Below, piece by piece: positions 3,433 through 61,992 of a stretch of 64,000 nucleotides of DNA (positions are counted from its first letter, which is position 1; each line of letters begins with the position of its first letter). Made by a program: the position numbers and the translations under genes. Under the pieces are notes generated by a model, which did not search any database, had not been told where the DNA came from, and saw only the letters and a list, made by a program, of their open reading frames with translations. The DNA comes from Bugula neritina (Eukaryota > Animalia > Bryozoa), in NCBI GenBank assembly GCA_964035545.1, contig OZ037771.1, forward strand, positions 7,991,408 through 8,055,407. The letters run 5' to 3'.

Positions 3433-12365
<8,933 letters not shown>

Positions 12366-14283: not shown

Positions 14284-15039
14284 TTACTAGAATTCAACCA
14301 CTGACACCATGTTTACTAAGCCAGTGCTCTATAACCACTAGACCACAGCTGCTCTCTGAGTGTAAGCTTACACACTTTTTTTGATTAGAAGGACCAAATA
14401 ATGATTTAAAACTTATGAATCAGTTAGAAAGACATACATTTTTTGCAAGTAAATAAAATTCCTTATATAGAAAGCCATTTGCATGTTTTGTCACTGAAAA
14501 GTTTCGGCTCTTGTTTAAAATTGAGTTGTCTTTACTAAATGATGAAAATAGTTCTGCCAAAAGTTACACAATTTATGCACTTTATTAGCTAATTATGTAC
14601 TGAGTTTTGTATGTTTCTATCATTATGGTAAACAAATTATTAGTAATAAAGGAAACTTGTAATATTCCATGTGTTATGTTATCAGCATCTGACACTAGGA
14701 TTATGTGATTTCTTTTACCCCCTTATCATAAATTGACCATATAAGTGAAATTTCATGTATTCACTTTTACTTCCTTCAAAGTATATTAAAAGTTGATTCG
14801 ATCTATTTGGACAGATAATTTTTCACATTGTTGCAATCACACACACGCATGGGCACATGCACACACGCATAGGCACACGCCCACATACACGCACGCACAC
14901 TCAAACCCATGTTTTCGTGCATACTAGGCAAACGCTCTAGCCCCTAGACCACAGGATTTGGGGTATTGTATATATTGCGTCTAGCTTAGTTCAAGGACAG
15001 CTACATATAGGTCAGACAACTCCATAATACAATACATAC

Positions 15040-15183
15040 CTGTCTGGTAGAGTAACCAGTTCACAACACTCCATCTCTAACTCTTTCAGTGATACTAAGG
15101 ATGTGAATATATCATCAGGTAGACCTTCAGATAGGTTATTCCACGCTATCCTCAGCATCTCAAGACTTTTCAGTGAAGATATG
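15040..15183 (-). pseudogene. Orphan 144-nt LRR cassette exon (copy of 44037-44180) with intact splice sites
   Basis: 2 mismatches in 144 nt versus 44037-44180; ttacag acceptor, AG|gtatgt donor; flanking intron homology about 14965-15376 versus 43962-44370. No other LRR-gene exon seen nearby. Confidence 0.8.
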
Positions 15184-15370
15184 CTGTAACATAGCACACA
15201 GGTATGAGATACGGTGACACTGATGACTGTATTGTCATAAGTTCACTAACATGGCAGCAGGAAAGTGAGGATATTAAAGGATTGTAAGTTTCTAAAAATT
15301 ATTGTAAATTTACATGAAGAAATGTTTGTAAACATAGTATGAAAATGACTGGGTATGTATGTTATATGAT

Positions 15371-15560
15371 GATCGGTATGCCATTAGTTTATGAGTATTA
15401 CTATTAGTATTAGTGTGCTTGTAGCCCACAGTCTTCGTTTCAGTCTCTAAGTATAAAGTAAGTTAGTATTTGGCTAGTAGTTAGTAGGCGTATGCTCAAG
15501 TACTAGTAAAGGGTTTGTTTTAATTAGTATAAGTATCTCTTATGAATTTATTCACTCTGT
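15371..15560 (+). repeat. ~190-bp dispersed repeat shared with 20151-20357
   Basis: Alignable throughout, e.g. GTATGCTCAAGTACTAGTAAAGGGTTTGTTT identical in both. Confidence 0.85.
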
Positions 15561-34000: not shown

Positions 34001-37000
34001 TGAAAAGGTTGACGTTGAAGAGTTACATCTACTTGTAGTTGAGGAACTGTGTTCATAGTCTTTAAGGTCCTGATAACTTTGAGTGGTTTGCTGTCATTCA
34101 TCTTCTTCTTTCGGCATACAATTTCAAGATGTCCAGTGAGTTTGCAGTAGTTGCATGTAGAACTTTTGTATCTGCATTCTGCTGGCTGGTGATTTGTCTT
34201 TCCACAGCGATAACAGGGTTTGTTGATATGTGTTGGCTGAGTCTTTGGTGTAGAGCTTGGAGTCGTCTTCTTCTTCTTGCTGACTTTATGGAGAGCGTTG
34301 ACCTCTCCGTGAACAGTTTCTTTAGCTACTTTAGCTGCTTCTTCAGTTTCCACAGCGATTTCAGTAGCTCTGTTGAAAGTGAGATCTTCGTCCTTGAGTT
34401 TAAAGATTGCCTTCAGTATAGCTTCATTTCCTACTGAGCATATAAATCTGGTACGAAGTGCTTTATCTTGTGGGTCAGTAATTGAAGAAAAGTCACAAGT
34501 TGTTGCGTCATGTCGAATCCTAGCTGCTAGTTCTGGAATAGTCTCCCCTGGCTTCCTTTTCATGTCGTGCCAAAATCTGTATTTTTCTCTGATGATGAAT
34601 GTCCTTGGGTTATATTGTGTCATCATGTAGTTGTTAACTTCATCCATCGTCAGTTTGTTGATCTCCTTCTTTGGTGTCTGCTGCTCCGCCCAATCACTCA
34701 ACTGCTTGTAGATGGCTGTTGTTTGGTTTGTCAAAAATACTTGTGGTATTTTATCCTCTGCGATTGAGTTGGCTCCAATGAAGGTGGTGAATCTTGCTGA
34801 ATATTGAGTCCATAGTTCTGTACTTGGATTAAATGCTGCAAAATTCGAGGTTGATGCTGGGGTTTTCTTCTCTGCTGACTGGGTGAGTAGTTGAATCAGC
34901 TCCCGATTTTCTGTTTGCTGCTGTTCTATCTATCTTTGCCTCTTGCTGTTCCATCCTTGCTTCTTGCTGTTCCATCTGTTGCTTCTGCAAATCCATCTGT
35001 TCCTTTTGCTGTGCCAACTGCTGGGTTAACAAAACTATCAGTTGATCTGTAGGTGTAGACATAATTTTTGAAGTATGTCTAAATGAAGAGTCTTTGAAGA
35101 TTTGAAGATTCTGATGATAACCGCGTAAAGTAAAAGTAGATGATCAGTTGAAAATCCTTGAAGCTGATCCCATCCTCGTCGCCAAAATCTGTTGTGTTTC
35201 AAACAGGTGTATTGATCATAAAATAATTTACAATGAAAACAGTAGAAGTGTTACCACCTTATATATTAACTTGCACAGAAAAGCTGATATAGCTGTCTAT
35301 AAATAAACAAAATAAGCGCTGAAGCTAACATGAAAAAGCCATTACATTTTTTAGATTTATGCAATGTCATGCTATAACAAACAGTATTCAAAGTAATGCA
35401 TGACGCACCAGTGTCAAGATGAAATTCAATGTCATAAATAGTATTTACCTGCTTAGCAGTGAGCATCGCTAATGGTTTACAATCCCATACTGTAGTGGAG
35501 ATAGTACTTACATTCTGAGAGTCACTGTCTGAAGAGTAGTTTTAAGCGACTTGATTGGCTGTTTCGGTTGAGTCGAGATAATGATGCATGCATGACCTGC
35601 AGTATGTGGCAAAGTGATTGAACTTCTTGCAATGATTGCGCTGCTTCCCATATGCTGGGCAAGCTCAAAGTGGAAGGTTGCCTCCACAGTTTCCACGCCT
35701 AGAAGCAACAACTGATTTTCTGACGTTGGGCTGAGAGCGAGTGTGTGAAAGCTGTCTTTTGTGTTTATCAGTATCACGAGTGTAGTCAGACTGGTATTGA
35801 TTAGTCGTAGTTCTATCTTTTACCAAGTTTGCTTGTTCGAGTCTATAAGTGTTACCATTATTCATAGTCTTGTAGTCAATGGCTGATGCTTCTTCCCGTC
35901 TACAGAGCTTAAATGCTTTATCAACGTCAGAGTCAGTCAAGTCAAACAGTTTTTTTTTAATTTTGACACTTTCAATCCCTAGTATAAGTGCTTGTAGTAT
36001 CAGTCGGTTGCTCATAACTTTCAAGTCACATAGTCCTGACATGGTATATAGTTCAGTCAAAAATTCGTCAAATACTTCTATTTCTTTGCTTACACATCAG
36101 TAGTGAATGAGTCCTAGCCACTAAGTTTATTCTTGGCTTGCAGTAGTCATCGAATTGCTTCGCTACTTTGTAGTCAGTTTTGTCATTGTTGTCAGTTCAG
36201 GTAAAAGATTCGTATATTTGGTATGCAATTTTCACTTTGCTATTGGCTGTATTTTTCGTGGTGGCAGTTAAAAAAAATTCAAAGTCACGTTTAAAAGTTT
36301 TGCACTCTTTAGGTAGATTCGGTCCATCTGCTAATGATTTTAGATGTCAATCACAGCCTGATTTCAACACCCTACTTATCAAAGTTTTTTTTAAACTTCT
36401 TTAGTTGTTTTCAAAGCTTTTCACTTTTCATAATGAAATGTTTTAGCACTTTTTAGAAACTCTAAGCCATACTGCCGACAGAATCTTGGCAAGCTGTTAA
36501 TAAAAGTCATGAGCTTGCTTCTCTCTTCTAATAATGCCATGAGGTCTTTTTCAATGGTATTTATTTGACAATAGGCTTCTTCTGTTTTCGTTTTGTACTG
36601 CTCCACTTGAGCATCTGTGATAACAGATGAGTGAACTCTTCAACAAAGAAAAGAGAGTTTTGATTTAGTCTTAGACAGTGAATCCTGCTGTTGCTTCTCT
36701 ACTTGAAAAACCAAACTATCGCTGTTGCTCTTCAGGCCATCAATCACATCATCCATGTTATTCTGTCTTTCAGTCAACTCTTTCTGAAGATTGACTAGAA
36801 TATTCCCAGTTTATCCTGAAAAGACTCAGTTTTGTTTTGAATATGCGCTGCTGAAGATAGAGTGGCTGATTGCAGCTTCACTATTTCCTTAATTAGTCCG
36901 TGAAGTTGAGCCAATCTTTGACCCTATTCGAATAAAACAAATACAGTCATGTTTCTAAAGATGTATGGTGCATGGCAAGGCTACTTTTGGTTATAAAGGC

Positions 37001-37030
37001 CAAGTGTTTTATTGCCATCGAAACCCAACA
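28024..37030 (-). mobile_element. Old, frameshifted Gypsy element (Mag-like) interrupted in its protease by a younger Gypsy
   Basis: gag 35665-36060; protease FHLDTGAS at ~35400; RT 30446-30853 (CDAKEGFYQI, YLRLPF); RNase H 29539-29925 (TDHKPL); integrase 28750-29300 (KVGIDLFE). Ends approximate; a shared AAAGGCCAA..GTGTTTTATTGCCA motif at ~28085 and ~36996 may be LTR remnants. Confidence 0.8.
31186..35379 (-). mobile_element. Gypsy (Mag-like) LTR retrotransposon, internally deleted and frameshifted (4194 bp)
   Basis: 190-bp LTRs 31186-31375 and 35190-35379 (TG...CA, 3 mismatches); TSD AACAG (31181-31185, 35380-35384); PBS 35167-35184 equals the 3' end of tRNA-Ser(GCT) ATCCCATCCTCGTCGCCA; gag with 2 CCHC, protease VDTGA, RT YLDD, RNase H CDASEVGIG, integrase TDNGPSF/NGAAER in broken ORFs. 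Confidence 0.95.
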
Positions 37031-37492
37031 TATTTTTCCAGAGTTGCTGAATACAGCTAAGCAGTTTGTAATGAGAGATATGCAACAAGCAAGTGGAATG
37101 GATAAAGATCTTCAAAATGCTAGTGATGTCCATGCAATAGGTAAGTACTGTGACAGCACGGATGCTGTATGGCACAGACTGCAACTTAACTTTATTAAAA
37201 GAGTAACAGCTTCATCATAAGTTTGTCTGACTACATCATAATAAGCATTCAAATCTAAAGAGGAGACGACTCTATAGTCTGCATATTTATCATCTGCCTC
37301 AACTATGTTGCAATAACTTGTGTGAAAGTCATTAAACTCGGAGTGAACTTCATTTAACTGTTTATATAACTGCTGAAAAAGTTCTAAGTCATTGGGGTTG
37401 GAAGTACTTAGCTGTCTGCATAATGAAGTTATTCTGGTCTTCAACTTCAATCTTTGTAACGTCAGTTGAATAATTTCCTCCTTGTCGCCCAT
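37030..37492 (-). mobile_element. N-terminus of a second BEL/Pao-like gag, opposite orientation
   Basis: ORF 37112-37492 (KYADYRVVSSLDLNAY) resembles the 20580 ORF (TYSSYRTVSGFNLNED); probably continues at 28020-27313. Confidence 0.5.
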
Positions 37493-40400
37493 GTTGAGTG
37501 GGTAGACTACTGTTTTGTGGTGTACTTGTCTGCATATCTATCTTTAGTCACTTTATAACTTGGTCCTCTGCATGTAACCACCAGAATAATTGTATGCCTT
37601 CTGTCTAAGCTCTTTTTTGGCTATAGGGTGCTATCGTTATTGCCACTCTATCTTCCAAAGTAGTTGTTACTTTATCTCTTACAGTAATTGTTACTGTAAC
37701 AGCATGAATGCTGTATGGCATGGATGCCTCTCAAGATAATTGTTACTGTGTCAGCACGAATGCTGAGTGGCACAGATGCCCATGTGTAGCATTGATGCTG
37801 TATGCTGGATGCACAGATGCAGGCCACAACTAAACCTTTTGCCTTATGCCAACAGTCTATATTTCTCACAAAACTCAAACTGTAACCTATAACCGTAAAA
37901 ACATCTTGTTAAATTAACATTACTCAACACAGCTATTTCTGACAGAACTTTTAATTATCAAAGTTAAAAAGAAAAGATAGTAACAATTACAATTATTTGG
38001 ACAATAAAGTTTAAGTTGCCTGCACTTTTAACAAAAGGGAAATTGAGCTGTACTGACTCAATAAACAAAAACTACCAGTAAAAAGCTAATGCAAAAGCTT
38101 TCACAAAAGTTTTCATCAAACAATCAAAAAGCTCCTGCAACAAGTACACACGACTCCATCCTGTGAGAAATGAGCTAGGCATTTGGATAGTTAGAACAAA
38201 ACTTTAGGAAACAATCCCCTGGCTGTAGATCCATCAATTTTACCCATCCCTTTGCCCATCGATGATCCATTGACTTTAACTTTAGTTCGTAAAGCGCATA
38301 TTACAAGTGAACATTGTAGTAGGATTTTACATTGGCTAAGCTTAGACAAGATTATTGGTGTATTAGTGATCTAAAGTTAGCTAGGAAGGTAGTAAATAAT
38401 CGTCAGAAGTGCCGCCTAAGAGATGCAAAGCTCCTTTAACAACAGATGGGAGTTTTACCTAGAGAGCGAGTTACGCCAGGCCGTCCTTTTAATTGTGTTA
38501 TGGTAGACTTTTTGGGTCATATTTGATGAGAGATTAAGTAGAGCACAGAAAAAGTAGGAACACACATGGGATTCTCTAAATTGATAATTTATATTTATGA
38601 GCGGGTCACATTGAAGCTGCTTTTGGGTATGATACTTCGGGCTTTCTTCTCAATCTTAAAAAATTTACCAGCTTAAGAGGATGGCCACAGGTGATTCTCA
38701 GCTCATTGGAACAAAAAGGGAGTTGTCAACTATGTGGGAAACCACTTGCAGACTTTGTGCTTAAAAGAAAATTAAATGGGTCACAGGGCTTGCAGACAGC
38801 AGTTGGCATCAAGATGCAGTAGAATTTCTTGTCAAAGCTACTAAGCGAGCACTAAAATTTGCTATCAACAATCAGAGACTGTCAGCATTAGAATTTTCAA
38901 CAATATTGACAAAAGTAGCAGATTTATTAAATAAAAACCTTTGAGAACACTAATTAGTGACAGTGACCTCGTTGTAAAATCCTTACTCCTAATCTTCCCT
39001 TGCTAGGTAGATCTGAGGCTACAAATCCTGGCGGATTGAAAAATGATTTCAACCTCAACGGTAGAGTGAAGGTTGTAGGCCGGGTTACTCGACTGTTTTG
39101 GGAAATGTGTGTTAAGAATTGTGCGCTCACTCTTATGATTCAGCGCAAGTGGAAAACTCGAACGCCAAATTTGCAACCGGGAATATAGTAGTTGTAGCTG
39201 ATGTTAACGTGCTTCATGGCCAATATAAAATTGGTATGGTGAGGGAGGTTTTTCCAAGGGTAGATGGCATAGTTCGAAAAGAAGTGGTATCTTATAACAG
39301 TTTAAAGGTGGGAGAACAAACCTATGAATATAAAGGGGCTAAAGATATTTTTGTTACATGTTGTGTTCAACGCCTCAGACTTCTATGCCCTGGGGATACC
39401 AATAACAAGTAAGAACGGTGCTTGAATGATGTAGACTGAGTAATTCATTTTTGTACTGCTTACCCTAGTAAATAAATTGGTGTGCATACTTTTATTGCTA
39501 GTTATTGTTAGGGTCATGGTCTCTTAACTAGCCATGATCATGCCAACATCACCCCTCCGATGTGCCAGGGAGATAATTCTGACTGTTCACCTATATTTTA
39601 CTGAAATTATGCTGTTAGCTTTTGCGGTTTGGTGAGCTAGTTTTTGGCTTTTGTTATTTGATTTTTGGCTGTAAATGAAACGACTTAGTTTGTATTATAA
39701 TTGTTATTGGTTTCATTTTTCAGAAAAATGTTCAAAGGAGCTGATATTTGCAAGTGTTGTTATGAATTAAAAGTTTTTTTTGTTGATATTGTATATTTGA
39801 AAGTTAATTATGCATATTTTTTTGTACAGATGTAACTATTTTCCTTATATAGAGTATACGTCAAAGACAGAGCAATAACTACATACAAACATCTCGGTGT
39901 AGACAACTTCCCAAATTATTGTAATGAACGGAAGTTATAGTTTTAGGTTGGCAACAATTATCCCTTGTTGAAATTTTTTTTTACTAGAATACCTAACCCA
40001 ATGAACCAAAACTTGATTATATATAGAAGGTTATGTTCAATGATATATTATATTTATATTATATTATATTATATTTCAATGCGATACAGAAAACATTACA
40101 TACAACTATATTGAAGCCAATAGAGAATAGGTTTTCACTGAAACAAGTCACATACATTACATGAAAACATGCATGCAAAATGATTTATTGCTCATTTATC
40201 TGCTGGACAGCTAAATCACTACATTGACTGTAAAATGCACATATTTTCAATATATCATTAGGGGCCTACTGCAATATTCTAAATGTTTATATGTGTGTTT
40301 GTGCAATGTGCATAATAATAATATATACATATAAATAATGCAGGATACAGCCTAATATACAATATACATAATGCACAATATTATTGTAATTTTGTGCTCT

Positions 40401-42819: not shown

Positions 42820-45800
42820 TCAGGTTGGAGGTTTTAAATTTGTGAAATACTTTTTGACATCATAAGCCCCTTTCTGACACACTCTAAGTGGTGGAGATAT
42901 GAGAGCATCACAACCGTGCCCTCCCAGAGAGTAAAGTTCAGTTAGTTGCAGTATCGCAGGATCTAAGGATGTCAATGACTCATTGGAGGATATATTCAGC
43001 GCCTGCAGACTACTCAGTGTGTACACAACAGGCGGTAAACTGGTGAAATTATTTGATGATATGTCCAGTCTTCTTAACTTCTGTAGATTCTGCAAACTAT
43101 AAAAAGTAATCCATCTTCAAGAAAATTAATGTAAATTTTATAAGCCCATGTTGGCATACAATATACACAGAATTAGAACTAGCAGTTCCCCCTTGAAAGT
43201 TATATTCACTTGCATATAATAACTTGTCCTTTACTTGTTGGAAGAAATAAATAAAGAAATAGTAGAGAAGTTACATGCAGCTTCTGTATCAGTCTATTTA
43301 TTAATGAGAAAAACTGGCGAATATCAACAAGTGTCTATTTTCTACACACTATGTGGATAGAACACGCATCCTCATTACAATATTCTATCACAATTTAGCA
43401 ATAGGTTTTGAAACTATTTAAAAGTAACCAAAATATCCCAACCAAGCAACTTAAGGATTCAAAAACTAGTAATGTCAACAAATGTAAATTAGAAAAAAAT
43501 AAGTGAATTACTTACATAATTACAACTTGAATTTTATTATGACTTTATAATTGATTATTGATTTGAACCTACAATTTTTAAGCTGGCTACTAGTTCCATT
43601 ATACTACTCCTGTTTCTATAGCAACAGTGACACAAAATTGTTTGGGTAGCTGTGATTGGTTAGCAAGACAACAGTAATAATGGTTGACCATCACAAAGTG
43701 AGCTGCGATTGACAAATTCGTTCATAACTTTTTACATCATATATTTCTGACGGTTCACACTACAAACTAGATTTACTAACACAAATAAACCAACTCCACC
43801 GACATAATTTAGTAAAATTTACCAGCAACATAATGTCCAATGCTAAATCAAATTATAGCTCACTCTATACTGTAATCTCAACTGGCCATAATAACCTCTC
43901 TGTATGCACAAACATGTTGCTCCAATGAAGACACCAGCCCTAATAAAAGCACGGCTACCATATTGTATATATTGCGTCTAGCTAAATTAAACGGCAACTA
44001 CATATAGGTCAGACAACTCCATAATACAATACACACCTGTCTGGTAGAGTAACCAGTTCACAACACTCCATCTCTAACTCTCTCAGTGATACTAAGGATG
44101 TGAATATATCATCAGGTAGACCTTCAGATAGGTTGTTCCACGCTATCCTCAGCATCTCAAGACTTTTCAGTGAAGATATGCTGTAACATAGCACACAGGT
44201 ATGAGATACGGTGACACTGATGACTGTGATGTCACAAGTTCCCTAACATGGCAGCAGGAAATTAAAGATATTAAAGGATTGTAAGCTCATAAAAAATATT
44301 GTAGATTTACATGAAGAAATGTTTGTAAACATATGAAAACGAGTCAATATGTAAGTTACATGCTGATTGGCTAGTGAAGCTACATGTTGATTGGCTTGTG
44401 AAGTTTCATGCTGATTGGCTAGTGAAACTACGTGCTGGTTGGCCAGTGAAGTTACATGCTGAAGATCCGTTACAGAACATTTCTCAGGTCTGATTAAATA
44501 CCCAAAACTTCACAAGCAAAACTATTAGATTACTTTATTACTTAAATGTTGGTAATGTTACCATCTGAATATGTGGAATAGTCCTATAAGCATCTCAAAT
44601 TTGGGGGGGGGGGTGAAGGACGCTTTTCGTTTAGGGGTCTCAAGTTTGGAGTTGCAAACCTAACTTTAAATTTGAGAACCCAAAACTAAAATCGTCCTTC
44701 ACCCCCAACTCAGAGCTGCTTATAGAACCATTTGAATATGAGACTCACGACCAGTTCATTTTCATGATAGATAGTTTCGATGGCCATACTGGTGAACTGT
44801 ATTGTATTTCCTTTTAGTAAGAAGGAGACGTCAAGTGTATAATTTATATAACATAAACTATTGCAGAGTTATACCATTGTATATTTATCACAATATCATG
44901 CTACTATACACACCTGTTTGGTACAGCCTTCAAGCTACACATTCCCATATCCAACTCTCTCAATGACTGTAAGGGTGTAAACAGATCGCCATGGAAACCT
45001 TCAGACAGATTATTCTCAGATATATCCAATACCTCAAGGTCCTTCAGTAGAGAGATGCTGTAACATATCACACAAGTATACAATGTAGCAAAAGTAAAGC
45101 TTAAGAAATGCCCAGTCCAACACCTTAAAAGGCATATTACCTGAAAATACTTCACTCAACAAAGAGAAGAGAACTTTATAATATCGAACACGCACCTGCT
45201 TGGTAGAGCTACAAGTTTACAGTCACACAACTTCAACTCTTTCAATAACAGTAAGGAGGTGAATATATCTTCAGGTAGACCATCAGATAGGTTATTGAAT
45301 GATACATTCAGCACTTTGAGATTCGTTAGTGAAGAAATGCTGTAAAATACATACATGGGTAACAAAGAACAGTACTGAGCGAGTGCAGTAGTCAGTGAAC
45401 TGCCATACTCGACACAGACTGCAGGTAGAAACAGGTGGCAGACCTAACTCTGAGTCATATGGAGATGCTTCCGTAAAAATCTGTCATCACAAAAACAAAC
45501 ACAATTCAGGAGATCCATTCCATTTCGAGCTTAACCTCCTTCAGTAAGATACCCACCTAAACAGTACATACAATACCATAGTGCCGTTTACCTGCTACAT
45601 GGTATAGCCAATTGAGTCAAGACAATTCTACGACAGGTTCTACACACCTGTTGGGTAGAGTTGGCAATTGACAGTAGTTCATATCCAACTCCCTCAATAA
45701 TATTAAAGGTGTGAATATGTCGTCAGGTAGACCTTCAGGTAGGTTATTGTCTGATATATTCAATACTTCAAGACTCTTCAGTAAAGATATGCTGTAACAT

Positions 45801-48800
45801 AACACAAGTGTGTAAAATCATGGATTAGGTGCAATAAATGATCCTAAACAGCCAATCTAGCATGTTTTTGAGTAGATACAGAGACTAGAAACAACACACT
45901 CATGTTGCTGTGCCAAAGAATGGGGATTGAGCTGCTCAAAAATACATAAATACACCAGTTTGAATGGTCAGAAGATAATGTATGAACTCGACAGTCATTT
46001 GATATCATATGGTGAAATATAGATAAAATATAGTACGCATACACAAGAGAACATAACACACACATGCACACACGCACACACATATATATATATATAAATG
46101 TTGAAATGCATATAGTGTGCAGTCTGTAAGGATAAGAGAATAAAACATTGATGTCATATGGTGGAATCATCGGATTATGATATATCTAGCCAAATATCCT
46201 TTACAGAAAGTATAATTAGTAGTATTGCATGTTATACACAATAGACACCTGTTTGGTAGAACCGATAGTTTACATGTCCTCACGCTCAAATCTCTCAATG
46301 AAAATAAGGATGTGAATATATCGTCAGCTAGACCTTCAGATAGGTTATTATTTGTTAAATTCAAAACTTCAAGATTCTTCAGTGCAGATATGCTGTAATA
46401 TACATACAGGTTGTAGCCATGAGAAATGAAACCATCAGTGAAATGGTGGAATCATTAAATTGGATTATTTCTACATGGAAAAACATTAACTCTAGCCAAC
46501 TATGGAAACACAGGTAGAGATAACTCTGAGACACGGATAACACACCTGTGTGGTACAGTTACCAGGTCACAGTCTTCCATGTCCAATTCTCTCAATGATA
46601 ATAAAGATGTGAAAATATCGTCAGGTATACCTCCAGAAAAGTCATTTTCTAAAATTTTCAATACTTCAAGATTCTTCAGTAAAGATATGCTGTAACACAA
46701 CACATAGCTATGAAATCCTGTATATCGTAATTGAACAGTAAGCAAAAGGTTCTATGAACTAATACAGTTCCGTGTAATGCAAAATATACATATACTATGC
46801 CACATACCCAGTTGGTAGAATTTTCAGTTTACATTCTTGCATGAATAACTCTCTCAAAGATACTAAGGATGTAAATATGTCGTCAGGTAGTCCTCCTGAG
46901 AAGTCATTTTCTGATATATCCAATACTTCAAGATTTCTTAGCAAAGATATGCTGTAATCATAGAGACACATAAATTTCGGTAATTACAGTGAAAAGAGCT
47001 TCACTAAAACTAGTTAGTGAGCTACGAAATATGACAATTGTATAGTTAGTAGTACCACTTATTACTCTGTATAATAATGTCCTGTACTCATCAGTAAATA
47101 CACTGCATTGGCACTGAGTAGCTACTAGCTACAGCACACCTGCTACTCAATGTCACACAGCACATCTGCTACTCAATGTTACACAGCACATTTGCTACTC
47201 AGTGTCACACAGCACACCTGCGACTCAGTGTCACACAGCACACTTGCTACTCAGTGTCACACAGCACACCTGTTACTCAGTGTCACACAGCACATTTGCT
47301 ATTCAATGTCACACAGCACACTCGCTACTCAGTGTCACACAACACACTTGCTACTCAGTGTCACACAGTACACTAGCTACTCAGTGTCACACAGCACACT
47401 TGCTACTCAGTGTCACACAGCACACCTGCTACACATGGTCACTGCAGTGCATTTACTAATAAGAGCTACAAGAAAAACCCATGTATTCAGTAGTAGAGAG
47501 TATGTATGATACTGAGGCTCGGACAATAAGAAATACTGAACAATTACGCGGACACTTCCACTTAAAAGTTGTGTCAGTTATATTCAAGGAGTGCAACAGG
47601 TAATGTCATTATATATATGTATTGGTATGCCACCCAGATGTATTGGCAGGCAGCCAATCATTAAAGCTTTCAAGCTTCAAAGCTTTCACCAAAGCTACTA
47701 TTAGCTGGGAGAGCTAGTGCATTCACTGTACTGCATGAGTCAGTGTATCATGATCAAACCGCCATATTTACACTCTTCGTAAGAATAAACTATCGGTTTC
47801 GGTATTGTGATGGCTAAGAATTTTACCTACGCATCAATATTGTAAGTTTATTAGAATTATAATAGTTCATGTCAATTTGTTTAGTTCTGTAATGTTCATG
47901 GTGTTCCTCTGAATTTTGATTTATATTGTGACTACTTACTTATACAATTTCTAATGTTTCCCATTTTTCTAGGGTACGATTTGAGAGTTAATAAACTTGA
48001 AAACCTGTTGCCAAGTTGGCTAGTAGTTAAAGCATATCTTGCAACCAGACACAAACACAAACCGATACAATATATAATACACACCTGCTAGGTAAAGTTG
48101 ACAATTTGCATTCCCTCATGTCTAACTTCCTTAATGGTAGCAGAGATGTGAAGAAGTTTTCAGGTAGAATTTCAGGTAAATCGTTATAAGACAAACTCAA
48201 TTCCTCAAGACTCTTTGTGGGGGATATACTGTAGAATAACATAACACGCATGTTTAGCAGTAGTTGTAGTGCTTTATCACTACATAGAATATATAAGTAT
48301 AATTATGACCCAATTATAGATTCACATATGTATTTACAAATATTTATATTATGTAGTTTTGTACTCTCACGCAAGTTTATAGTCACCATTCCTGTCGGAA
48401 CCTCTGGTGGAAGGGGTTTGTAAAATTGGGCTAAGGACTTGTTCACAAGTGGCATAAAAGCAATTAAGACTGGATGCTCTTCCTAACATCACCAATGGCT
48501 TTTACTGGGGTCCAAACCAACGAATTTGTGTTTACCAAGCCAACACTCTAACCTCTAGACCTAGACTGCTCCCTATACTATATAACTTTATACATATACT
48601 CCAAAGTTACTTTTAATGAAAACGTTGTATTATACCTGTTGAAGTTAGTATCAGAATCTGCAAAGTTTACTCTCAGATGTGTGATATTAGGAAACATTGT
48701 GTTGATATCTAAAGAGTTATCTCCTCTCAGTATAACATGTGTGACAGTTTGATGTTTGCTTTTTTCCTTGATCTCTTCTATAGTGTAGGCTGTAGTGTTG

Positions 48801-49464
48801 TTCTCCATCCACTTGTCACCGTCTTCAACTATACAGGATGTGTTGAACCACACCCAGTATTTCTCTACAGGTAACACAAAATTTACTCTCTATTAACACT
48901 AGGCTGCTGATTGAACAAAATGCTGCCACTATGCAGACCAGTCAGCAGTACTTTATATGCTAAGCAGTGTCAGTAACATTGACAAGTATACTACCCTCAA
49001 GTTTCATTTTTAATAAAAAACTCTGTAATGTTAGAGAGTGGAAGGACACCAGCATATCATCAGGATATGCAAGTAGAACCATGTGGTCAGTCTTAGAGAC
49101 AACATATACTAACTAAAAATGTCCATTAATAATTCTACTACTTTCATTCACTAGTAAATAAACACCTCAATAAAATTTGTGGAGTCTGTTTCAGATTTAA
49201 TTTCATTAATTCTGTAGTTACCTGAAATGTCTGCTTCTATATAACTTACTAACCAGTCACAGACTGAGTTGAAGGCAGAGCTACAGACTGAGTTGGAGGC
49301 GGAGCAACAGACTGAGTTGAAGGCGGAGCCATGAACTGGGTTGGAGGCGGAGTCACAGATTTAGTTGGAGGCGGAGCTACAGACTGAGTTGGAGGTGGAG
49401 TCACATTCTGAGTTAGAGGCGGAGTCACAGGCTGAGGCGAAAGTTGAGAAGCTGAATCACTCAT
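42820..49464 (-). CDS. LRR protein B (622 aa): Pro/Thr-rich N-terminus, N-cap domain, 8 two-LRR cassette exons, ROCO/MFHAS1-like C-cap
   Basis: Exons 49254-49464, 48636-48864, cassettes 48085-48228, 46808-46951, 46546-46689, 46249-46392, 45648-45791, 45196-45339, 44914-45057, 44037-44180, last 42820-43096. All GT-AG; total 1869 nt in frame with no internal stop. Confidence 0.9.
44355..44462. repeat. ~24-bp tandem repeat (GTTACATGCTGATTGGCTAGTGAA)
   Basis: 4-5 degenerate copies. Confidence 0.8.
44583..44727. repeat. Imperfect foldback/inverted repeat (probable MITE remnant)
   Basis: CTATAAGCA..GGGGGTGAAGGACG pairs with CGTCCTTCACCCCC..TGCTTATAG. Confidence 0.7.
47125..47432. repeat. 26-bp minisatellite (TGCTACTCAGTGTCACACAGCACACY)n
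   Basis: About 11 copies; the same array sits in the corresponding intron of gene A (57968-58212). Confidence 0.93.
48371..48572 (-). mobile_element. tRNA-like SINE copy
   Basis: Reverse-complement homology to 51775-51980; head-only fragments also at ~14305-14356 and ~14905-14953. Confidence 0.7.
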
Positions 49465-50133
49465 ACTGTGGTCACCGGTCACAGCTGTAGATGTCTTTAG
49501 TCTTATCTGTAACAACAAATTAGTAAGGAACTCACCACACAGATGACACATAAATGTGGTCCTACTAAAAAGAAATAATTAATTTCAGTTTAAATACATT
49601 TGAAAGTTAGTAGGCAGCTTTAGGATGTGTACTAGCATCATATAACAATTCATGTCACTTGTACTACTGCAACCATCCTTGTGAAGTTATAACAGATAAT
49701 AGTCATTCATCAGCTTGAAAGACACAAGTCACACATGATTTGTGTGTTTCCATAAAATAACTGCTGCTCTCAAATATAACCACACATTCTGCTTTTCCAG
49801 CTTATAAATTTTTCACTCCCCTATTGGCTATTCAACTAGAATGATTTCACATTTGACAGAAAAAATTGAATAAGATATCAAGTAAACTTAAGACTGGTTT
49901 ACTAGTTACCATTACTAAGATTTTATAATCATAGTTGTGAGGAGAAACTTTATCATAAAATTGTCACCTCAAATCAAGTATTAAGTTTAATATTACTAAA
50001 TCACTTCATAGGTTTACTCATGAAGCAAACACAAACATAGTAATAATTGGTTACAAAGCATAGCACTTAGTAAAGGTATGCTCTAATAAAACTGGCTACC
50101 ATACATATACACAGAAACTCTTCAACGCTCTTA

Positions 50134-50512
50134 AGGCCTGGCCTCACGATCGTGAGAATCACACGAAATCGTATGACGATTTTCGTGAGTTATCCTCTTG
50201 TTTTGACCAGCCACACACTAGTCGGACGAAACACATAATAAATACTCCGTGAATGAGTCTTGCACGAGGTACAAACAGCAGAAAATTGTCAAATAGAGAA
50301 ACGTGATAGAAATGAAATAATTACTGTTGCTAAAATTCTATTGACCAATCAAATGGTACTTATCGTCGATTGTGATTTTTCGTCCATCGTCATTGTTGTG
50401 TACACCCAACGATGACGATTTCGTTTGAATTCCCTCAAATTTTCTTGTAGGAATAATTTTTTGTGTCAAATAGACGATTTCGTGTGATTCTCACGATCGT
50501 GTAGCCAGGCCT
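50134..50512. mobile_element. MITE, PIF/Harbinger-like (second family)
   Basis: About 39-bp TIRs AGGCCTGGC..CACGATCGTGAGAATCACACGAAATCGT; TTA TSD on both sides. Confidence 0.85.
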
Positions 50513-51077
50513 TTAAGGTCTCTCCACATCTGGGAACTTTGAAACTGTTGAAACTAGCCACTGAAAAATACAAACTGCCAAGACAGACATATTTTTTAAC
50601 AAAGTGTTAAAGGGACCAGGTGTGACTGAATGTGCAGTAAGTGTTGTGTTCAAAGACTAACAATCTACTGAAAACCATTGTGACCAAAAACGGTTGTGGC
50701 CATCACAAAACCTCCAATTTTGGAGGCCCATAAGAGATGAGAGTTCTGCATATTCTATATTGGTGTCAGAAATGAGTAAAATATGTATATATTTGGTAGA
50801 ATATTCTTATTTAGATAAAATAAAAATTGTGGTTATTTTTTAAAATAATTTGCATTAAAATTACATATTTCTAATTATTGTCATACTGAATATTCAAGTG
50901 AGAGCAGTGATAATTATAAGTAATAATAGTAAAATATGTATTAGCAGTAGTGACTGTAACTATCTAGATATTGATAAATCCAGGACTAGAAAACTATAGT
51001 CTTCTAATAATAGTAGGATTCTGAAATTAATATCATAATGACATAAATCATCATTAGCTGTCTACAGGACCAGATCA

Positions 51078-51300
51078 CTGTTGACAGAACTAGGTGAATG
51101 TTGACAGAACTAGGTGAATGATGACAGAACTAGGTGAATGTTGACAGAACTAGGTGAATGATGACAGAACTAGGTGAATGATGACAGAACTAGGTGAATG
51201 ATGACAGAACTAGGTCACTGCTGACAGAACTAGGTAAATGATGACAAAACTAGGTCACTACTGATGGAACTAGGTCACTGCTGATAGAACTAGGTCACTG
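51078..51300. repeat. 20-bp minisatellite (GACAGAACTAGGTGAATGAT)n
   Basis: About 11 copies. Confidence 0.92.
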
Positions 51301-51774
51301 TGGTTCCACTCTCACAGAAGTCAGTTAAAAGTTTAAACTTTTCAAGTCAGCGCAGTGATCAAACCGTGTGCTGCAGCAGCTAAGAATAACATGTAGTGAA
51401 TATTTACAAAGAGTTTATAAAAAACAGCAATGATTAGTATTAGTTTTATAACACTATGAACTTCAGAGCCAAACACCATCAGTATGAGCACATAATTTCT
51501 TATAAAACAAAATTGTTTGAGCATAAGATCCTGAAACAGTCTGCAGATTATAGATGAGGTATATATGGATGCTTTATTACTGCATAACTAAGTTGTGTCG
51601 AGATTCTTTAATATATAATATTTATAAAAATAAAATGTTGCAGCTATAAGATTGAATCATTGAAATATTTTAAATTTACCAGTTCATGAGTCTAGCTAAA
51701 AGACTTAGTTTAAATTTATAGAACTTTCAAAACACATTTGCAGAAAATTAACTAGCCAATTGTGTGTAATACCA

Positions 51775-51980
51775 GAGAGCAGCCGTGGTCTAGGGGTTAG
51801 AGTGTTTGCCTAGTAAGCATGAAGTCATGGGTCCAAGCCCTGACAAAAGCTATTGGTGATGTTAGGAAGAGCATCCAGTCATAATTGCTCCTGTGGCCCA
51901 TCTGAATAAGTTCTTAGCAGCTTTAACAAAAAACCCTTCCTTCAGGGGTTTCTCACAGGGATGCTGACTATAAACTTGCA
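51775..51980 (+). mobile_element. tRNA-like SINE overlapping the stop codon of LRR gene A
   Basis: A-box-like GTGGTCTAGGGGTTAG and degenerate B-box GGGTCCAAGCC; body and tail align with 48371-48572 through GACTATAAACTTGC. Confidence 0.72.
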
Positions 51981-54900
51981 GGAGTTAGTGTGTAATACCG
52001 GTTCACGGCATTGACTCCTCTCATACATGTTGCTAGTGGAGGAGATGTGAGAGCATTACAACTATATACAAACAGTGACTGGAGTTGAGTTAGATTTTGT
52101 ATCGCAGGATCTAAGGATGTCAATGACTCATTGGAGGATATATCCAGCGCTTTCAGACTACTCAGTGTGTACACAGCAGGCGGTAGTTTTGTTATGTTGT
52201 TGCTTGGTATCATGAGTCGTTGCAACTTCTGTAGACTTTGTATACTATAAATACGAAATAAATTCACATGACAAATATATATGCAAAGTCTCGGCATGCA
52301 AATTACCTGCTAAAGTGCAGCAGTAAACTCATAGATATATAGTATATAACTGTCAGTAATGGGGCATGAAGAGACGATTCTGGATTGTGCAAGAAGTAGA
52401 GATTTGACGCTGGTTACTACTTTCTACGCCAAAAGTGATGAGAAGACCTATACATACAAGATTGACCTAAACCAAGGAGTGATTGATTGCATCATAATAC
52501 CATGAGAACATTTTGGTAATGTGAAAGGTTTTAAACTGATCCTAGGTGAACCAATAGCACCACAATGTATGCTCTTAGTGATGGGTTGAAAGGTCAAAAA
52601 AGAGAAATTAGTAAGAAAGAGTACACTGGTAAACGTCAAAGAGAAAGGAAGTGAGCTGGTTTGCAAGGTTGCAGACATGTTAGCACATCAAAGCAAAGTG
52701 AGTGATTTGACATACAATAAGACATACCCAAAAATAATTAAAGCAGCAAATGAGTCACTTGGAGTAAGCAAAGGTGAATAAGGAATGAATCATGGTGATG
52801 GAATGAGGAAGTCCAAGAGGGAGTGAAGAAAAAGCAAGCCGCCTTCAAAGACAGGAAAAGAATCAAATCAGTCGAAGACAAAAGATACTGAAGACTGAAT
52901 AAGATCAGCAAAGAAAAGTGTGCAACAGCAAATGGCAGTTGTGAAGACTTGTGTAAAGATCTAGAAGAAAATGGCCCAAAATATATAAGTTATAAAGGAC
53001 AAGCCAAAGCAAATAGAAGAACATATATATGATAGCATTCATTGAAGATGAGCAGAGTAAAATCAGGAGTGAACATAAGGTCATCAAAGAAAGATGGAAA
53101 GAGTACTTCAACAGACGACTAAAAACCAAAAACATAAAACAAGAAAAAACAGCAATGGAGAAAGTACAGGAGCCAGTTGAGGATATCACAGGAGAGAAAG
53201 TTCAAAAATCAGATAGAAATGATGAAATCGAATAAAGCAAAAGGTCTTGATGAGCTCCCTATAGTGATGATTAATAAATGTTATCTCAGATGACAATGGG
53301 GGAGATACACTGTGGAATATGCTGTGTACAGATGACCAGGTATTTTTCTGATGAGAGTAGAGGCAATATGGAAGAAAGATTAAAAGACTCGAAAGGAAGA
53401 TGATCAAATGTCAGCAGATCTGAAGCTGAAAACCTACTCAAAAAGAAAGCAACACAACATCAAGTGAAAGGTATATATGATAGCTCTAAACATGCCATTT
53501 TGCTCTAAAAAAACTGCATTCAAATGCCTGGGGATTCAATCACCGGAATGGAGGATGCAAGGCAGAGGTGAGAGAGTGAGAGGGAGAGAGGGAGAGAGGG
53601 AGAGAGAGAGAGGGAGGGAGAGAGAGGGAGGGAGAGAGAGGGAGAGAGGGAGAGAGAGAGAGAGGGAGGGAGAGAGAGGGAGGGAGAGAGAGGGAGAGAG
53701 GGAGAGAGAGGGAGAGAGAGGGAGAGAGAGGGAGAGAGAGGGAGAGAGAGGGAGAGAGAGGGAGAGAGGGAGAGAGGGAGAGAGGGAGAGAGAGGGAGAG
53801 AGGGAGAGAGGGAGAGAGGGAGAGAGGGAGAGAGGGAGAGAGGGAGAGAGGGAGAGAGGGAGAGAGGGAGAGAGGGAGAGAGGGAGAGAGGGAGAGAGGG
53901 AGGGAGGGAGGGAGGGAGAGAGGGAGAGAGGGAGAGAGGGAGGGAGGGAGAGAGGGAGGGAGGGAGAGTGATGATGACATCAGAAGAGTACATGAGATGA
54001 TAGTAAAAAGGAACAAAAAACTGATGGCAATGAGTACAACCGTCACAACCGTAGACGATCAGCAAGACGACAGCAGACAGTCAAACACTAAGACTTGTTG
54101 GTAAACGGTAAGCTAGCCTAGTCGTAGGTGTTGGCTTTAACTTGCTATATTATGTATCTAGAACATCGTTTAGTTACAACAACTTGCTGTACTTTACTTT
54201 GTATTTAAAGTTTTCTTCTAAACATTTTAAACTTGTAGTGTATTCAATGCTTTTTCCTGACTATTTATTATTATTGTTGCGATAGCATACATGGCTATTC
54301 TCTAGAAAGTTGTATATAAGCAAGGCAAAGCTTAGTTAATGTTCAGTAGTATGGAGTAATAATTTGTAGTAGCTTTCAGAGCAGTTAGAAGTTGTTCATT
54401 CAGTTAGTGTGTTCAGGAAAAAACTACAAAGTAACACAATGAGTCAAGGATTTTCAACTTACGGAATCAACCCCGCAGTACACCAGAAACTGCCCAACAT
54501 CAAAATCATCAGCTGACTACAGGTTCTACTCTACATGTCCAACATGATGGTTGGAATAATTGCTCTGAAGACCAGAAGAAAACTTATACTACTCAAAACC
54601 TCTAAGAGTAGCTGTTATTGGCTAACCAAAGTTATGTAATAATAATCTTTTGACATTGCAGCCCCCTGAGTTTGCCCACTATACCCATGACCTAAACTAA
54701 TATATGTTCTATTACATATATTGTTATATATTAAATACTAAACACAACTCATTAAGGTAAAAAGCAAACCTGTCTGGTAGAGTTATCAGTTCACAATACT
54801 CCATTTCTAAATCTGTCAATGATACTAAGGATGTGAATATATCGTCAGGTAGACCTTCAGATAGGTTGTTCCATGATATAATCAATTTCTCAAGATTCTT

Positions 54901-57900
54901 CAGTGAAGATATGCTGTAACGCAACACACATGTATAAGCTACAGTGTAATAGAACACACAGACACATAAGTTAACTATTATCATCATTACTATGGTTTTA
55001 GTGTTAGAGATGATATTAGTGCTGGCAGTGGTATTGGCAGTAGCAGTGGTGGTAGTTGCAGTGGCAGTAGCAATAACAGTAGTGGCAGTGATGGTAGTTG
55101 TAGTAGTAGTAATAGTAGCAGTGGCAGTAGTAGTTGTAGTAGTACTAATAGTAGCAGTGGCAGCAGTAGTTGCAGAACAATTAAAACAGTAATAACTAAT
55201 ATTCAAGTAGTTATACACAGCAGTTGCACAATACAGTGTTTCTAGGATGTAACAATATATACCATAAACAATATAGCTGTACATATTAATTCCAGCATCG
55301 TTCTACATCGTATTACAACACTCACCTGCTCGGTAAAGTTACTAAGTTGCACATCTCCATGTTCAACTCTCTCAATGATTGCAAGGATGTGAATATATTG
55401 TCAGGTAGACCTTCAGGTAGCTTATTCCATGATATATCCAATACCTCAAGATGTTTTAGTAGAGATATGCTGTGACAAGGGAAACAGTATACACTTAAGT
55501 TTTAATATGGAAGCATTTCACAAGAACAGGTGAGCGATTTTACATAATGTAAGTCTATGACAGTTGTATATCAAGTAGTACCACTTATTACTGTATAACA
55601 GTGTTACACAGTTAGAGTTGTCTGCTACTTCCACTGACGTGGGCATGTGATTCATTATATTCTTAACCAAAGTACATATGTCAGATAAACTCAGTAGACA
55701 TTGACCTACGTTTGCCATCACATGGTATGAGAATTACGCAGTGAGTGCCCATTCAGCAAATACCCAGTCACTGTTATACCCACAACAAACAGAGTCTAGT
55801 TGACAAGTATTGTACATTAGAGAGTTGTCTTCCCTATGTAATTGAAATTACATAGTGGAGATAACTCTCTAATGTAAATACTCACCTGTTTGGTAGGGCT
55901 ATGAGTTCACAGCTACACATGTTCAACTCCTTTAATGATGGAAAGGATGTGAATATATCATCAGGTAGACCTTCAGATAGCTTATTGTCCTGTAAAGTCA
56001 ACACCTCAAGATTCTTCAGTGAAGATATGCTGTAACATAACATAATTGAGTAAAAAGAGTATATAATGGAATGAGATAAAGAACAACAGTGGTGAGTGAG
56101 CTGTTATAATTGACATAGACTGCAGGTAAAAGCAAACAGAAGAGAAGGAAGAAGTAAGAGTTGTATAACTTGACATAAGCTTGCAGGTAGAACTTCAATA
56201 AACATGGCAGGTGCTTGTATAATAAATATGCAACTGAAATTAATAAATGTTATAGTTGTCAATTCTTATACAAGAAAAAACTATTAAATGCTGTAAATGA
56301 CATCATGTTGTAAATCGGCGTTAGCGAATAAAGACTAGCTGATAAATCAAGGGGTGTACAAAAAAATAAATGGCTTACTAAAGAGGAGCTGAATGAGATG
56401 GAGAAAAGAAGTGATGATGAAAATACTAATGAAGAGGGAGATAACCACAAAAATGGTAAGACACTGCCTAGAAATTGCAACCAAGAATAAAACAGAAGGA
56501 AATATACTAGAGAGAATGCCAAGAGAATTGACTTCAAAGAAAAACAACTGAGAGAAAGAGAAAGCTTTACAGAGTTTTTGAGTCAAAATTGGAAACTTTG
56601 TCAAAAACTGTCAGAATCTTCACAAGAGCTACACCTAAATAATTTGGAGTGCGAAAGTGATCCACGTGGGTCATGAGAAGAGAGAAGGAAAATAGGACAG
56701 AAGAATCATTACAACAAGGAAGCTTATCACTATGAATCGTGCACTCTACCCAAGAGCAGATGTGGACAGACTGTATGTTAGAAGGAGAGAAGGCAGCAGA
56801 GGAATGATGTCAGCTGAATAATGCGTAAGGATTGAAGAATGCAGCTTGTCAGATGGGACACACAATGTGGAGTAACTTCTAAAGGACAAAATCCCTGAAG
56901 CACGGAACATAAATGAAGTGATTGAAAAAACTAAGAGATGAAAAGAAAGGCACTACATGATTAGTACATTAGAGGAGTGAAGAAATGGACTGGTTAGTTG
57001 AAGATGTCACCAAATAAGTAGTATAATTATACCTTTTTGGTAGAGTTACCAGCTCACAGGACCGCATGTGTAGCTTTCTCAGTGATACTAAGGCTGTGAA
57101 TATGTTGTCAGGTATACCTTCAGATAGGTCGTTTTCTGTTACATCCAATACCTCAAGATTCTTCAGTAAAGATATGCTGTAACACACATACAGGTTGCAG
57201 CCATGAGAAATGAAAACAGCAGCAAAATGGTGGAATCATTAAATTGGAATATTCCTCCTTGGTTATACATTGAGTCTAGCCAACTCCGGAGGTACAGGTA
57301 AAGGTAACTCCAAGATACCTAGTACACACCTGTTTGGTAGAGTCAACAGTTTACATTTCTCCATGTCCAATTCTTTCAATGATAGTAAGGATATGAATAT
57401 ATCGTCAGGTAAACCTTCAGCTAGGTTATTATCAAACATTTTCAATACCTCAAGATTCTTCAGTGATGATATGCTGTAACATAATATATGAGTGTGAGAT
57501 CATGTGTATTATAATGGAACAATGAGCAAACAGGTTCTCTGAAATAATACAATATATGATTTAAACAAGATACTACATTCTATAATATAATTAATAAATA
57601 TTACATTACGCACACGCACGCACAGATATAATACATACCTGCCAGGTAAAGTTGCAAGCTTGCATTCATTCATGTCCAGCACTCTCAATGATAGTAAGGA
57701 TGAGAACATAACGTCAGGTAGATCTTTAGATACGTAATTTCCTGATATATCCAATACTTCAAGATTTCTTAGTAAAGATATGCTGTAAAAGGCAAGGATG
57801 TATAAATGTTGGTTATCACATGGAAACTTCACTATAGCTAGTTTGTGAGTTACAGTAGGTCTATGACAGTTGTATAGTTAGTAATAGTACTTATTATTCT

Positions 57901-59402
57901 GTGTAATAATGTTACAGTCAAAGTCGTGTACTCATCGGTAAATACACTGCATTGACACTGAGTAGCTACTAGCTACAGCACACCTGCTACTCAGTGTCAC
58001 ACAGCACACCTGCTACTCAATGTCACACAGCATACTTGCTACTCAGTGTCACACAGCACACCTGCTACTCAATGTCACACAGCATACTTGCTACTCAGCG
58101 TCACACAGCACACCTGCTACTCAATGTCACACAGTACACTAGCTACTCAGTGTCAGACAGCATACTTGCTACTCAGTGTCACACAACACACCTGCTACTG
58201 AGTGTCACACAGCTATCATTAGTAAATGCACTGTACTGAAATCTCCACCCAGCCAGTTGAATAAGTTATAAATAAGAATTCAAACAAATGTTATTATATA
58301 TAATACATGCCTGCTAGGTAAAGCTGACAATTTACATTCCTTCAATTCCAGCTTCCTTAATGATAGCAGAGATGTGAATGCATCGTCAGGTAGAAATGTA
58401 GATAAATCATCATAAGAAAAACATAATACCTCTAGACTCTTTATTGAAGCTATACTGTAGAATAAAATATATATCTGTAATTGTTACATGAGTATATTGC
58501 TGTACAATCAATATATAAAATTTAAAATGCTTATGTGCTTTTTCGTTTTAGTGTAGGCCTACTTTCCTCTGCATATTTTGTTATGTGCGTATGCATGTGC
58601 GTGTGAGTTCTATCTTTGATTAATGAAGTCTTGCCTTACATATATGAAAAACGTGTTTCTACATTGAATAAGCATAAGGCAGTTGAATAGAATAAGTCAG
58701 TAAACATAGACACCAAACAGACATGCAGATATTTTATGTGAGTCAAGTGAAAAGAAAATAATAGGGCAGCTACAAAGATATAGGGCTGGATTCGAGAAAG
58801 TGATGGATAAGTTAATTATGTTGCATTTTGTGATTCCAAATTATAATCTTACACTATACCTGCTAAAGTCAGTGTCACTGTTCACATCATAAATGGATAG
58901 GTGTGTGAGATGAGGAAACAGTGTAGCAATATTTGGAGAAATGTTCTCTCCCAGTATCATATGAGTAACTGTATGACGTGGACTTATATCTCGGATCTCT
59001 TCTATAGTGTAGCAGGAAGTAAAACTCCCTATCCACTCGCCATCTTCTTCTTCTATACTGGATGTGTTGAACCACACTCGGTGCCTATCTGCAAGTTATA
59101 CGATATGTGATAGTTTATACATCACACCGTCAATGAGTAGATATTTACAGATTTCATCACATCAGTATCCTAACCTTATACAGCACGATGCTCTGCCAAA
59201 ACTGCGCCTCACACAATATTCAGTATAACTACTGCTATTTGATAGGTCTGCTACAGATCTAAGTTGATACAGTCCTTAACCACCGGTCAAAAGGTTTGAG
59301 TTATATAATTTACTAACTTGGTACTAGCTGAGTTGGAAGTTTAGTTTGAGGTAGAGTTGAATGTGAGGGTTGAGTTGGAGGCTGGGATACAGACTCATCC
59401 AT
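51968..59402 (-). CDS. LRR protein A (532 aa): paralog of B with 7 two-LRR cassette exons
   Basis: Exons 59318-59402, 58860-59088, cassettes 58311-58454 (GC donor), 57639-57782, 57330-57473, 57033-57176, 55886-56029, 55326-55469, 54770-54913, last 51968-52244. Total 1599 nt in frame; the 229-nt and 277-nt exons match gene B in size. Confidence 0.88.
52355..53500 (+). mobile_element. Decayed non-LTR retrotransposon fragment (RTE-like endonuclease/linker)
   Basis: Broken peptides [42 protein letters not shown]. Confidence 0.6.
53570..53968. repeat. GA-rich (GGGAGAGA)n simple repeat
   Basis: Homopurine tract of about 400 bp. Confidence 0.96.
54990..55172. repeat. Degenerate (GTA/GCA/GTG)n trinucleotide repeat
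   Basis: Intronic; yields the poly-T/A and poly-V ORFs. Confidence 0.85.
56200..56960 (+). mobile_element. Decayed, internally deleted non-LTR retrotransposon (R4/Dong-like)
   Basis: [21 protein letters not shown] at ~56745-56810 is the typical post-RT motif; upstream [10 protein letters not shown] segment. Confidence 0.55.
57968..58212. repeat. 26-bp minisatellite, paralogous to 47125-47432
   Basis: Same unit and same flanking intron sequence. Confidence 0.92.

Positions 59403-61503: not shown

Positions 61504-61992
<489 letters not shown>

Follow-up and report, generated by a model that had tools for sequence, protein, structure and literature searches.

Two neighbouring genes (A and B), both on the minus strand at positions 42820-59402 of the 64,000-nt stretch of Bugula neritina DNA analysed here (the window), have been under purifying selection since the split of two lineages and are not decaying, and sequence comparison indicated that they are descendants of a ROCO gene that lost everything past the C-cap. 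Their predicted products are complete, capped cytosolic LRR solenoids without GTPase or protease, which probably serve a ROCO-caspase family diversified in the germline as its LRR-only decoys or partner sensors; genome-wide searches showed about 110 predicted LRR-Roc-COR-caspase paralogues of A and B.

An ungapped scan of the interval 42820-59402 found 15 exons whose length is exactly 144 nt, eight in gene A and seven in gene B, and one more at 15183-15040, thus confirming the cassettes of the initial annotation as well as the stray copy that it had placed elsewhere in the window. Every one of them is preceded by an AG acceptor and reads as 47 open codons with a single extra base in front and two behind (phase 2-2), and all cassette donors are GT with the exception of a GC at 58311 (cassette 1 of gene B). 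The encoded unit consists of two LRRs, one of the Asn type (25 aa) and one of the Cys type (23 aa), with the motifs LxxLxxLxLxxNxL from residue 4 and LxxLxxLxMxxCxL from residue 29, and the cassettes are 56-88% identical in pairwise comparisons, well above chance. The plan described before for both genes (P/T-rich exon, 229-nt N-cap exon and cassette array) was also recovered (Table 1), and the spliced frames are open over 622 aa in gene A and 532 aa in gene B. The two genes are colinear tandem duplicates, A being one cassette longer, with common intron DNA over cassettes 2-4 and, in each gene, the same 26-nt minisatellite in the intron that follows cassette 1 (47131-47442 and 57975-58213), which marks their tandem origin. 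By-eye reading revealed neither a signal peptide nor a membrane segment in A or B, whose N-termini are rich in P, T, S and Q and whose C-termini stop at the cap, in agreement with the cytosolic location proposed earlier. The N-cap had no Pfam match and gave weak leads at best in the Atlas; 43 representatives of it, mainly exon-sized, were obtained.

Table 1. Features of genes A and B and associated elements in the window
Feature	Position	Strand	Description
Gene B first coding exon	59318..59402	-	ATG at 59402 and 28 P/T/Q/S-rich codons, phase-1 donor; ATG in frame in second lineage
Gene B N-cap exon	58860..59088	-	229 nt, phase 1-2
Gene B cassette array	54770..58454	-	Seven 144-nt phase 2-2 exons
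Gene B cassette starts	58454, 57782, 57473, 57176, 56029, 55469, 54913	-	
Gene B terminal exon	51968..52244	-	Three LRRs and C-cap; ROCO-exon homology stops at YYT
SINE-like repeat	51762..51999	+	226-nt insert, 12-nt target-site duplication
Gene A first coding exon	49254..49464	-	ATG at 49464 and 70 P/T-rich codons of 24-nt repeats, phase-1 donor
Gene A N-cap exon	48636..48864	-	229 nt, without Pfam match
Gene A cassette array	44037..48228	-	Eight 144-nt phase 2-2 exons
Gene A cassette starts	48228, 46951, 46689, 46392, 45791, 45339, 45057, 44180	-	
Gene A terminal exon	42820..43096	-	Three LRRs and C-cap; AATAAA at 42770
Stray A8 copy with flanking intron	14964..15376	-	Exon 15183-15040, 142/144 identical to gene A last cassette

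Profile searches covered the 216-Mb assembly, in which the Roc-less genes A and B sit within the 64,000-nt window. The genome-wide search for the cassette, proposed in the initial annotation as a check, gave at least 150 matches (827 candidates), whereas the N-cap and the terminal exon (C-cap) gave 56 and 108 matches, respectively. Beyond most of the C-cap matches the frame remains open for 680-750 aa, and this extension is Roc-COR; the Roc search itself gave 111 matches, none of them in the window. In the paralogues Roc scored above the Pfam cut-off and COR-A weakly, and their caspase exons exceeded the Pfam cut-off for Peptidase_C14 (PF00656) and carry the motifs THG...EVCSG and SHG...HACSG (His-Gly and catalytic Cys). 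When counted by hand, a caspase exon was located at most 8 kb downstream in 81 of the 108 C-cap matches.

Gene structures of the paralogues were derived from 20 sampled genome loci, spliced models being searched by single exons. The order in these parent genes is a P/T-rich exon, an N-cap exon, the cassettes, a 2-kb C-cap/Roc/COR exon and the caspase exons; the 20 sampled genes have from 2 to 9 cassettes each, and several possess a like P/T-rich first exon. The cassette length was 144 nt in 89 of 96 cases and 132, 141 or 147 nt in the others, all of them symmetrical and in frame. The caspases of loci L001, L003 and L004 and those of L002, L006 and L017 belong to two types, HACSG and EVCSG, with about 44% identity, although these loci have near-identical cassettes and their Roc-COR exons are 76-90% alike, which suggests possible effector swapping.

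All the named relatives were bryozoan, namely B. neritina EB796_002463, whose tail matched assembly GCA_964035545.1 at 82-95%, and proteins of Watersipora subatra. The earlier proposal of a lineage-restricted, expanded family is supported. In a Watersipora gene, six double-LRR exons of 141 nt (phase 2) occur together with Roc-COR and next to a caspase model, so the design is common to two cheilostome genera. Two scans of metagenome contigs gave no match, and the papers searched, a set to which subscription journals mostly did not belong, described neither a ROCO-caspase family in bryozoans nor any animal family that combines an LRR sensor, a Roco switch and a caspase.

The variation within the family is concentrated on one face of the solenoid. 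Among 53 related cassettes the scaffold was near-invariant, while 7-15 different residues occur at positions 14, 36, 38 and 39; all four are x positions of the LxxLxLxxN/C strand, which in established LRR structures form the concave face. Disjoint pairs of paralogous cassettes had a dN/dS of 1.6 (range 1.4-1.9) on the concave face versus 0.44 in the scaffold. The dS of the cassette scaffold was 0.13 versus 0.45 for Roc-COR of the same gene pairs, and the nearest cassette lay in another gene for 73 of 86 cassettes (the cassette tree was poorly resolved), both of which point to probable sequence exchange between the cassettes of different genes. One JGI gene had a caspase half without a match above 86% in this genome, which would be consistent with gene turnover. 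Taken from these sequence comparisons, the diversity of the family appears to be germline in nature, its sources being the birth and loss of genes, the duplication of cassettes, inter-gene exchange and concave-face change.

The contigs nearest to the window genes came from two JGI samples whose records cite AY690838, the B. neritina mitochondrial genome (PMC2678162). Orthologous loci of these contigs and the assembly are about 87-93% identical, and identities of 90-93% at such loci lead us to infer that the JGI sample is a sibling Bugula lineage, about 10% diverged, of the B. neritina complex.

The terminal exons of A and B were 77-78% identical in DNA to the 5'-end of the ROCO exon as far as a junction, where the match ends at YFT/YYT; the stop of gene A lies about 20 codons ahead of the position of the Roc P-loop. 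Both are indeed 277 nt long, as the initial annotation had noted for its C-cap exon, but they are really the 5' stump of the 2-kb C-cap/Roc/COR exon. No Roc-COR homology was found past the junction in the window, and caspase motifs were absent from the window genes. The only candidate for Roc-COR remnants farther down the window was a single hit with an E-value of 0.008, which was rejected because it lies within retroelement DNA. Splicing of the C-cap onward at a GT near the junction was also rejected, since this GT is not conserved in the JGI copies. ROCO proteins being defined by Roc followed by COR, genes A and B fall outside the definition, while their paralogues carry Roc.

In gene B a SINE (3555 candidate copies in the genome), missing from the second lineage, sits four codons ahead of the original stop and supplies the last 21 nt of the exon (six codons and the stop). 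The uninterrupted exon measures 271 nt, and the equal length of the two stumps is therefore a coincidence. The SINE was rejected as the cause of the truncation, given that SINE-free copies stop four codons later. The JGI copy of the gene A terminal exon has an identical stop position, and that of gene B stops where predicted once the 226-nt SINE is removed; hence the truncations are older than the lineage split, and all the later divergence tests truncated genes. AATAAA is present 3' of both stops, at equal distance in both lineages.

Loss of Roc-COR was not limited to these genes. At least 11 genome loci matched the C-cap fully with no Roc behind it (the nine beyond A and B were judged by search tables), and the internal stops at two of the 11 imply that some are pseudogenes. 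In all four Roc-less junctions that could be read, the break lies no more than about five codons past the cap helix. A single clade of all Roc-less copies was rejected (p-AU 0.008), in a tree that gene conversion could distort, and the sister grouping of A and B in C-cap trees received moderate support (95/91 and 77/75). The repeated breaks, leaving exactly a capped solenoid, would fit selection for an LRR-only product. A Roc-less locus at 33.92 Mb (C1) was also present in the JGI lineage, at 97% identity including the DNA after the stop, and another at 15.68 Mb (C6) had a more distant Roc-less match. The 97% between L026 and C1 (33923492-33924633), compared with 87-93% at other loci, may reflect either introgression or unusual conservation.

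Selection was measured by codon counting. Over 386 codons of A/B exons and their JGI copies, dN/dS was 0.34 (p = 5e-5), dS equalled the intron divergence (0.104), and no indels were observed versus about 11 expected; over 701 codons, including all seven cassettes of gene B, dN/dS was 0.45 (p = 3e-6). The constraint is weaker than on Roc-COR (0.34-0.5 versus 0.22). The array order is B'-B-A in the JGI lineage and B-A in the window, so some of the compared copies may be paralogues, which leaves the selection test unaffected because all copies share the truncation.

These results bear on the idea that A and B are pseudogenes or a silent cassette reservoir from which the full-length genes receive sequence, a proposal made for Ectocarpus (PMC3341825). 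The truncation, the SINE in one coding end and LINE-like remains in introns are in keeping with it, as is the stray cassette, 29 kb off, which shares a near-identical 227-nt tract with A8. Nevertheless, with dN/dS well under 1, about 3.4 kb of exons without stop or frameshift and all splice sites intact, we consider it very improbable; moreover, the window cassettes are 77-89% identical to the nearest sampled cassette, versus 92-97% for those actively exchanged, and thus lie outside the sampled exchange pool. As for the stray copy itself, 3 of 227 nt differ from A8 over the exon and near introns, but farther out in the flanks 18 of 152 nt do so, a pattern that suggests a gene-conversion tract or selection on the stray copy. 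Directly downstream of it, a minus-strand gene with Sushi/CCP-repeat exons occupies window positions 7500-12100.

For gene B, all seven of whose cassettes recur in JGI contig L029, and for the full-length genes L008 (5/5) and L011 (6/6), the two lineages agreed in cassette number and order. Deletions of 44 and 59 nt in B5 and B6 of contig L028 were taken as assembly errors, being absent from the otherwise identical L029. The first exon of gene A has one more 24-nt repeat unit in the JGI lineage. The variable cassette number claimed in the initial annotation thus holds among the paralogues but not for gene B, and fixed number and order had been named there as evidence against A and B being diversifying receptors, a view that is not supported for these Roc-less offshoots. 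The claim of diversification fared likewise: it stands for the concave face of paralogous cassettes but not for A and B since the split, where concave dN was 0.098 versus 0.066 in the scaffold (1.4-fold, p = 0.21). In full-length orthologues the concave codons change about three times as much as the scaffold (p = 6e-5), with synonymous change also raised (dN/dS 0.46).

A combinatorial receptor generator, in which cells would skip or mix cassettes into many isoforms or rearrange them somatically, is suggested by the fact that all cassettes, here and in the paralogues, are symmetrical and in frame, and LRR exons of brown-algal ROCOs are alternatively spliced (PMC11378527). However, the 256 and 128 in-frame subsets of eight and seven exons are pure arithmetic, and symmetrical exons by themselves are no proof of combinatorial diversity, since exon duplication alone yields them with no need of skipping. 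The stable number and order, the retention of its own sequence at each cassette position and the strong, canonical splice sites make such a generator quite unlikely. Because selection keeps a fixed exon set, A and B look like decoys or partners and not like a variant mixer.

By analogy to bacterial conflict proteins (PMC8195603) and brown-algal ROCOs, the full-length members may be one-chain sensors, in which ligand binding by the LRRs would flip the Roc-COR switch and activate the caspase. Genes A and B would bind a ligand or partner through their now stable surface without signalling of their own, and could thereby be decoys or dampeners of the full-length proteins, or work with them in trans as partner sensors, possibly in responses to pathogens or in allorecognition. 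A wider scheme, a bryozoan cytosolic immune or allorecognition network of about 110 receptors tuned by recurrent LRR-only decoys or partner sensors, plus alternative cassette splicing, is conceivable but doubtful.

The solenoids could instead have been co-opted as non-immune cytosolic scaffolds for fixed protein binding, unrelated to the signalling of the parents; a SHOC2- or RSU1-like role is a model for such a scaffold. A stable cassette set and a concave face without excess change since the split are what this would predict, and the proline-rich N-terminus might engage SH3/WW-type partners. Even so, the Roc-less genes have more than one origin and are located among or beside parent genes, and the locus differs in copy number, which is typical for conflict-driven families, so that a scaffold role seems unlikely to us. 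The sequence is compatible with a decoy, a partner and an unrelated scaffold alike.

Likeness to the Ectocarpus LRR-ROCO genes was noted in the initial annotation and proved closer than was known there. Brown-algal LRR-ROCO genes (Ectocarpus, Saccharina) have phase-2 symmetrical LRR exons upstream of Roc-COR and are clustered, with birth and loss (PMC3341825, PMC11378527). The bryozoan LRR exons are likewise phase-2 symmetrical, the bryozoan family too is clustered and shows birth and loss of genes, diversifying selection on the concave face was also found in bryozoan paralogues by the counting method, and LRR-only relatives occur in both (S. japonica has 15). In contrast, the bryozoan exon encodes two LRRs in 144 nt and the algal one a single LRR in 72 nt, the bryozoan parents add a C-terminal caspase, and the window genes lack Roc-COR and are under purifying selection. 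What the window adds, as read from the genomes, is a Roc-less class kept by selection and, from the comparison of lineages, evidence against the mixing of cassettes.

Bacterial conflict proteins combine LRRs, an AP-GTPase (Roc), COR and an effector (PMC8195603), an example being the Roc-COR-CHAT protease of Runella, which is paired with gasdermin (10.1101/2021.06.07.447441). Bacterial conflict proteins and bryozoan parents alike are single chains in which an LRR sensor is joined to a Roc-COR switch and to an effector of the caspase family, but the bryozoan family is animal, intron-rich and of about 110 copies, and the window genes are the sensor only. MFHAS1/MASL1, under whose name the Watersipora relatives are annotated, has the LRR-Roc-COR order of the parents but, unlike the bryozoan family, neither cassette arrays nor caspase; genes of this type are single-copy in vertebrates. 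Lamprey VLRs resemble the bryozoan family in their capped LRR solenoid and concave-face variation. They are secreted or membrane-anchored, and their germline gene is incomplete until non-exonic cassettes are added to it somatically, whereas A and B are complete in the germline, with spliced exons as cassettes and a cytosolic product. Tandem arrays of same-phase exons are what A and B have in common with arthropod Dscam1; the Dscam1 exons supply a single domain in mutually exclusive versions, while those of A and B encode consecutive solenoid repeats, conserved one-to-one, an anatomy that would favour consecutive use.

In fusing LRR sensor, Roco switch and caspase, this animal family resembles bacterial defence proteins and has an independent parallel in brown-algal ROCOs; its selected sensor-only members offer a handle on the regulation of such receptors. 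They also provide a natural control for studies of the ligands of Roco LRRs and of effector gating by Roc-COR, a question that extends to LRRK2-type proteins.

Elsewhere in the window, an LTR retrotransposon at 21658-27307 has LTRs of 519 nt that are identical to each other and a single intact ORF of 1489 aa, with integrase domains followed by reverse transcriptase and RNase H, plus a weak SCAN match; it is a very recent insertion. In an Rfam scan of the window, no hammerhead ribozyme was matched at 61814-61860, either at the gathering threshold or at E-values up to 1. Several broken or nested retroelement frames lie within positions 29300-39400, where a 190-nt direct repeat (98% identical) occurs at 31186 and 35190.
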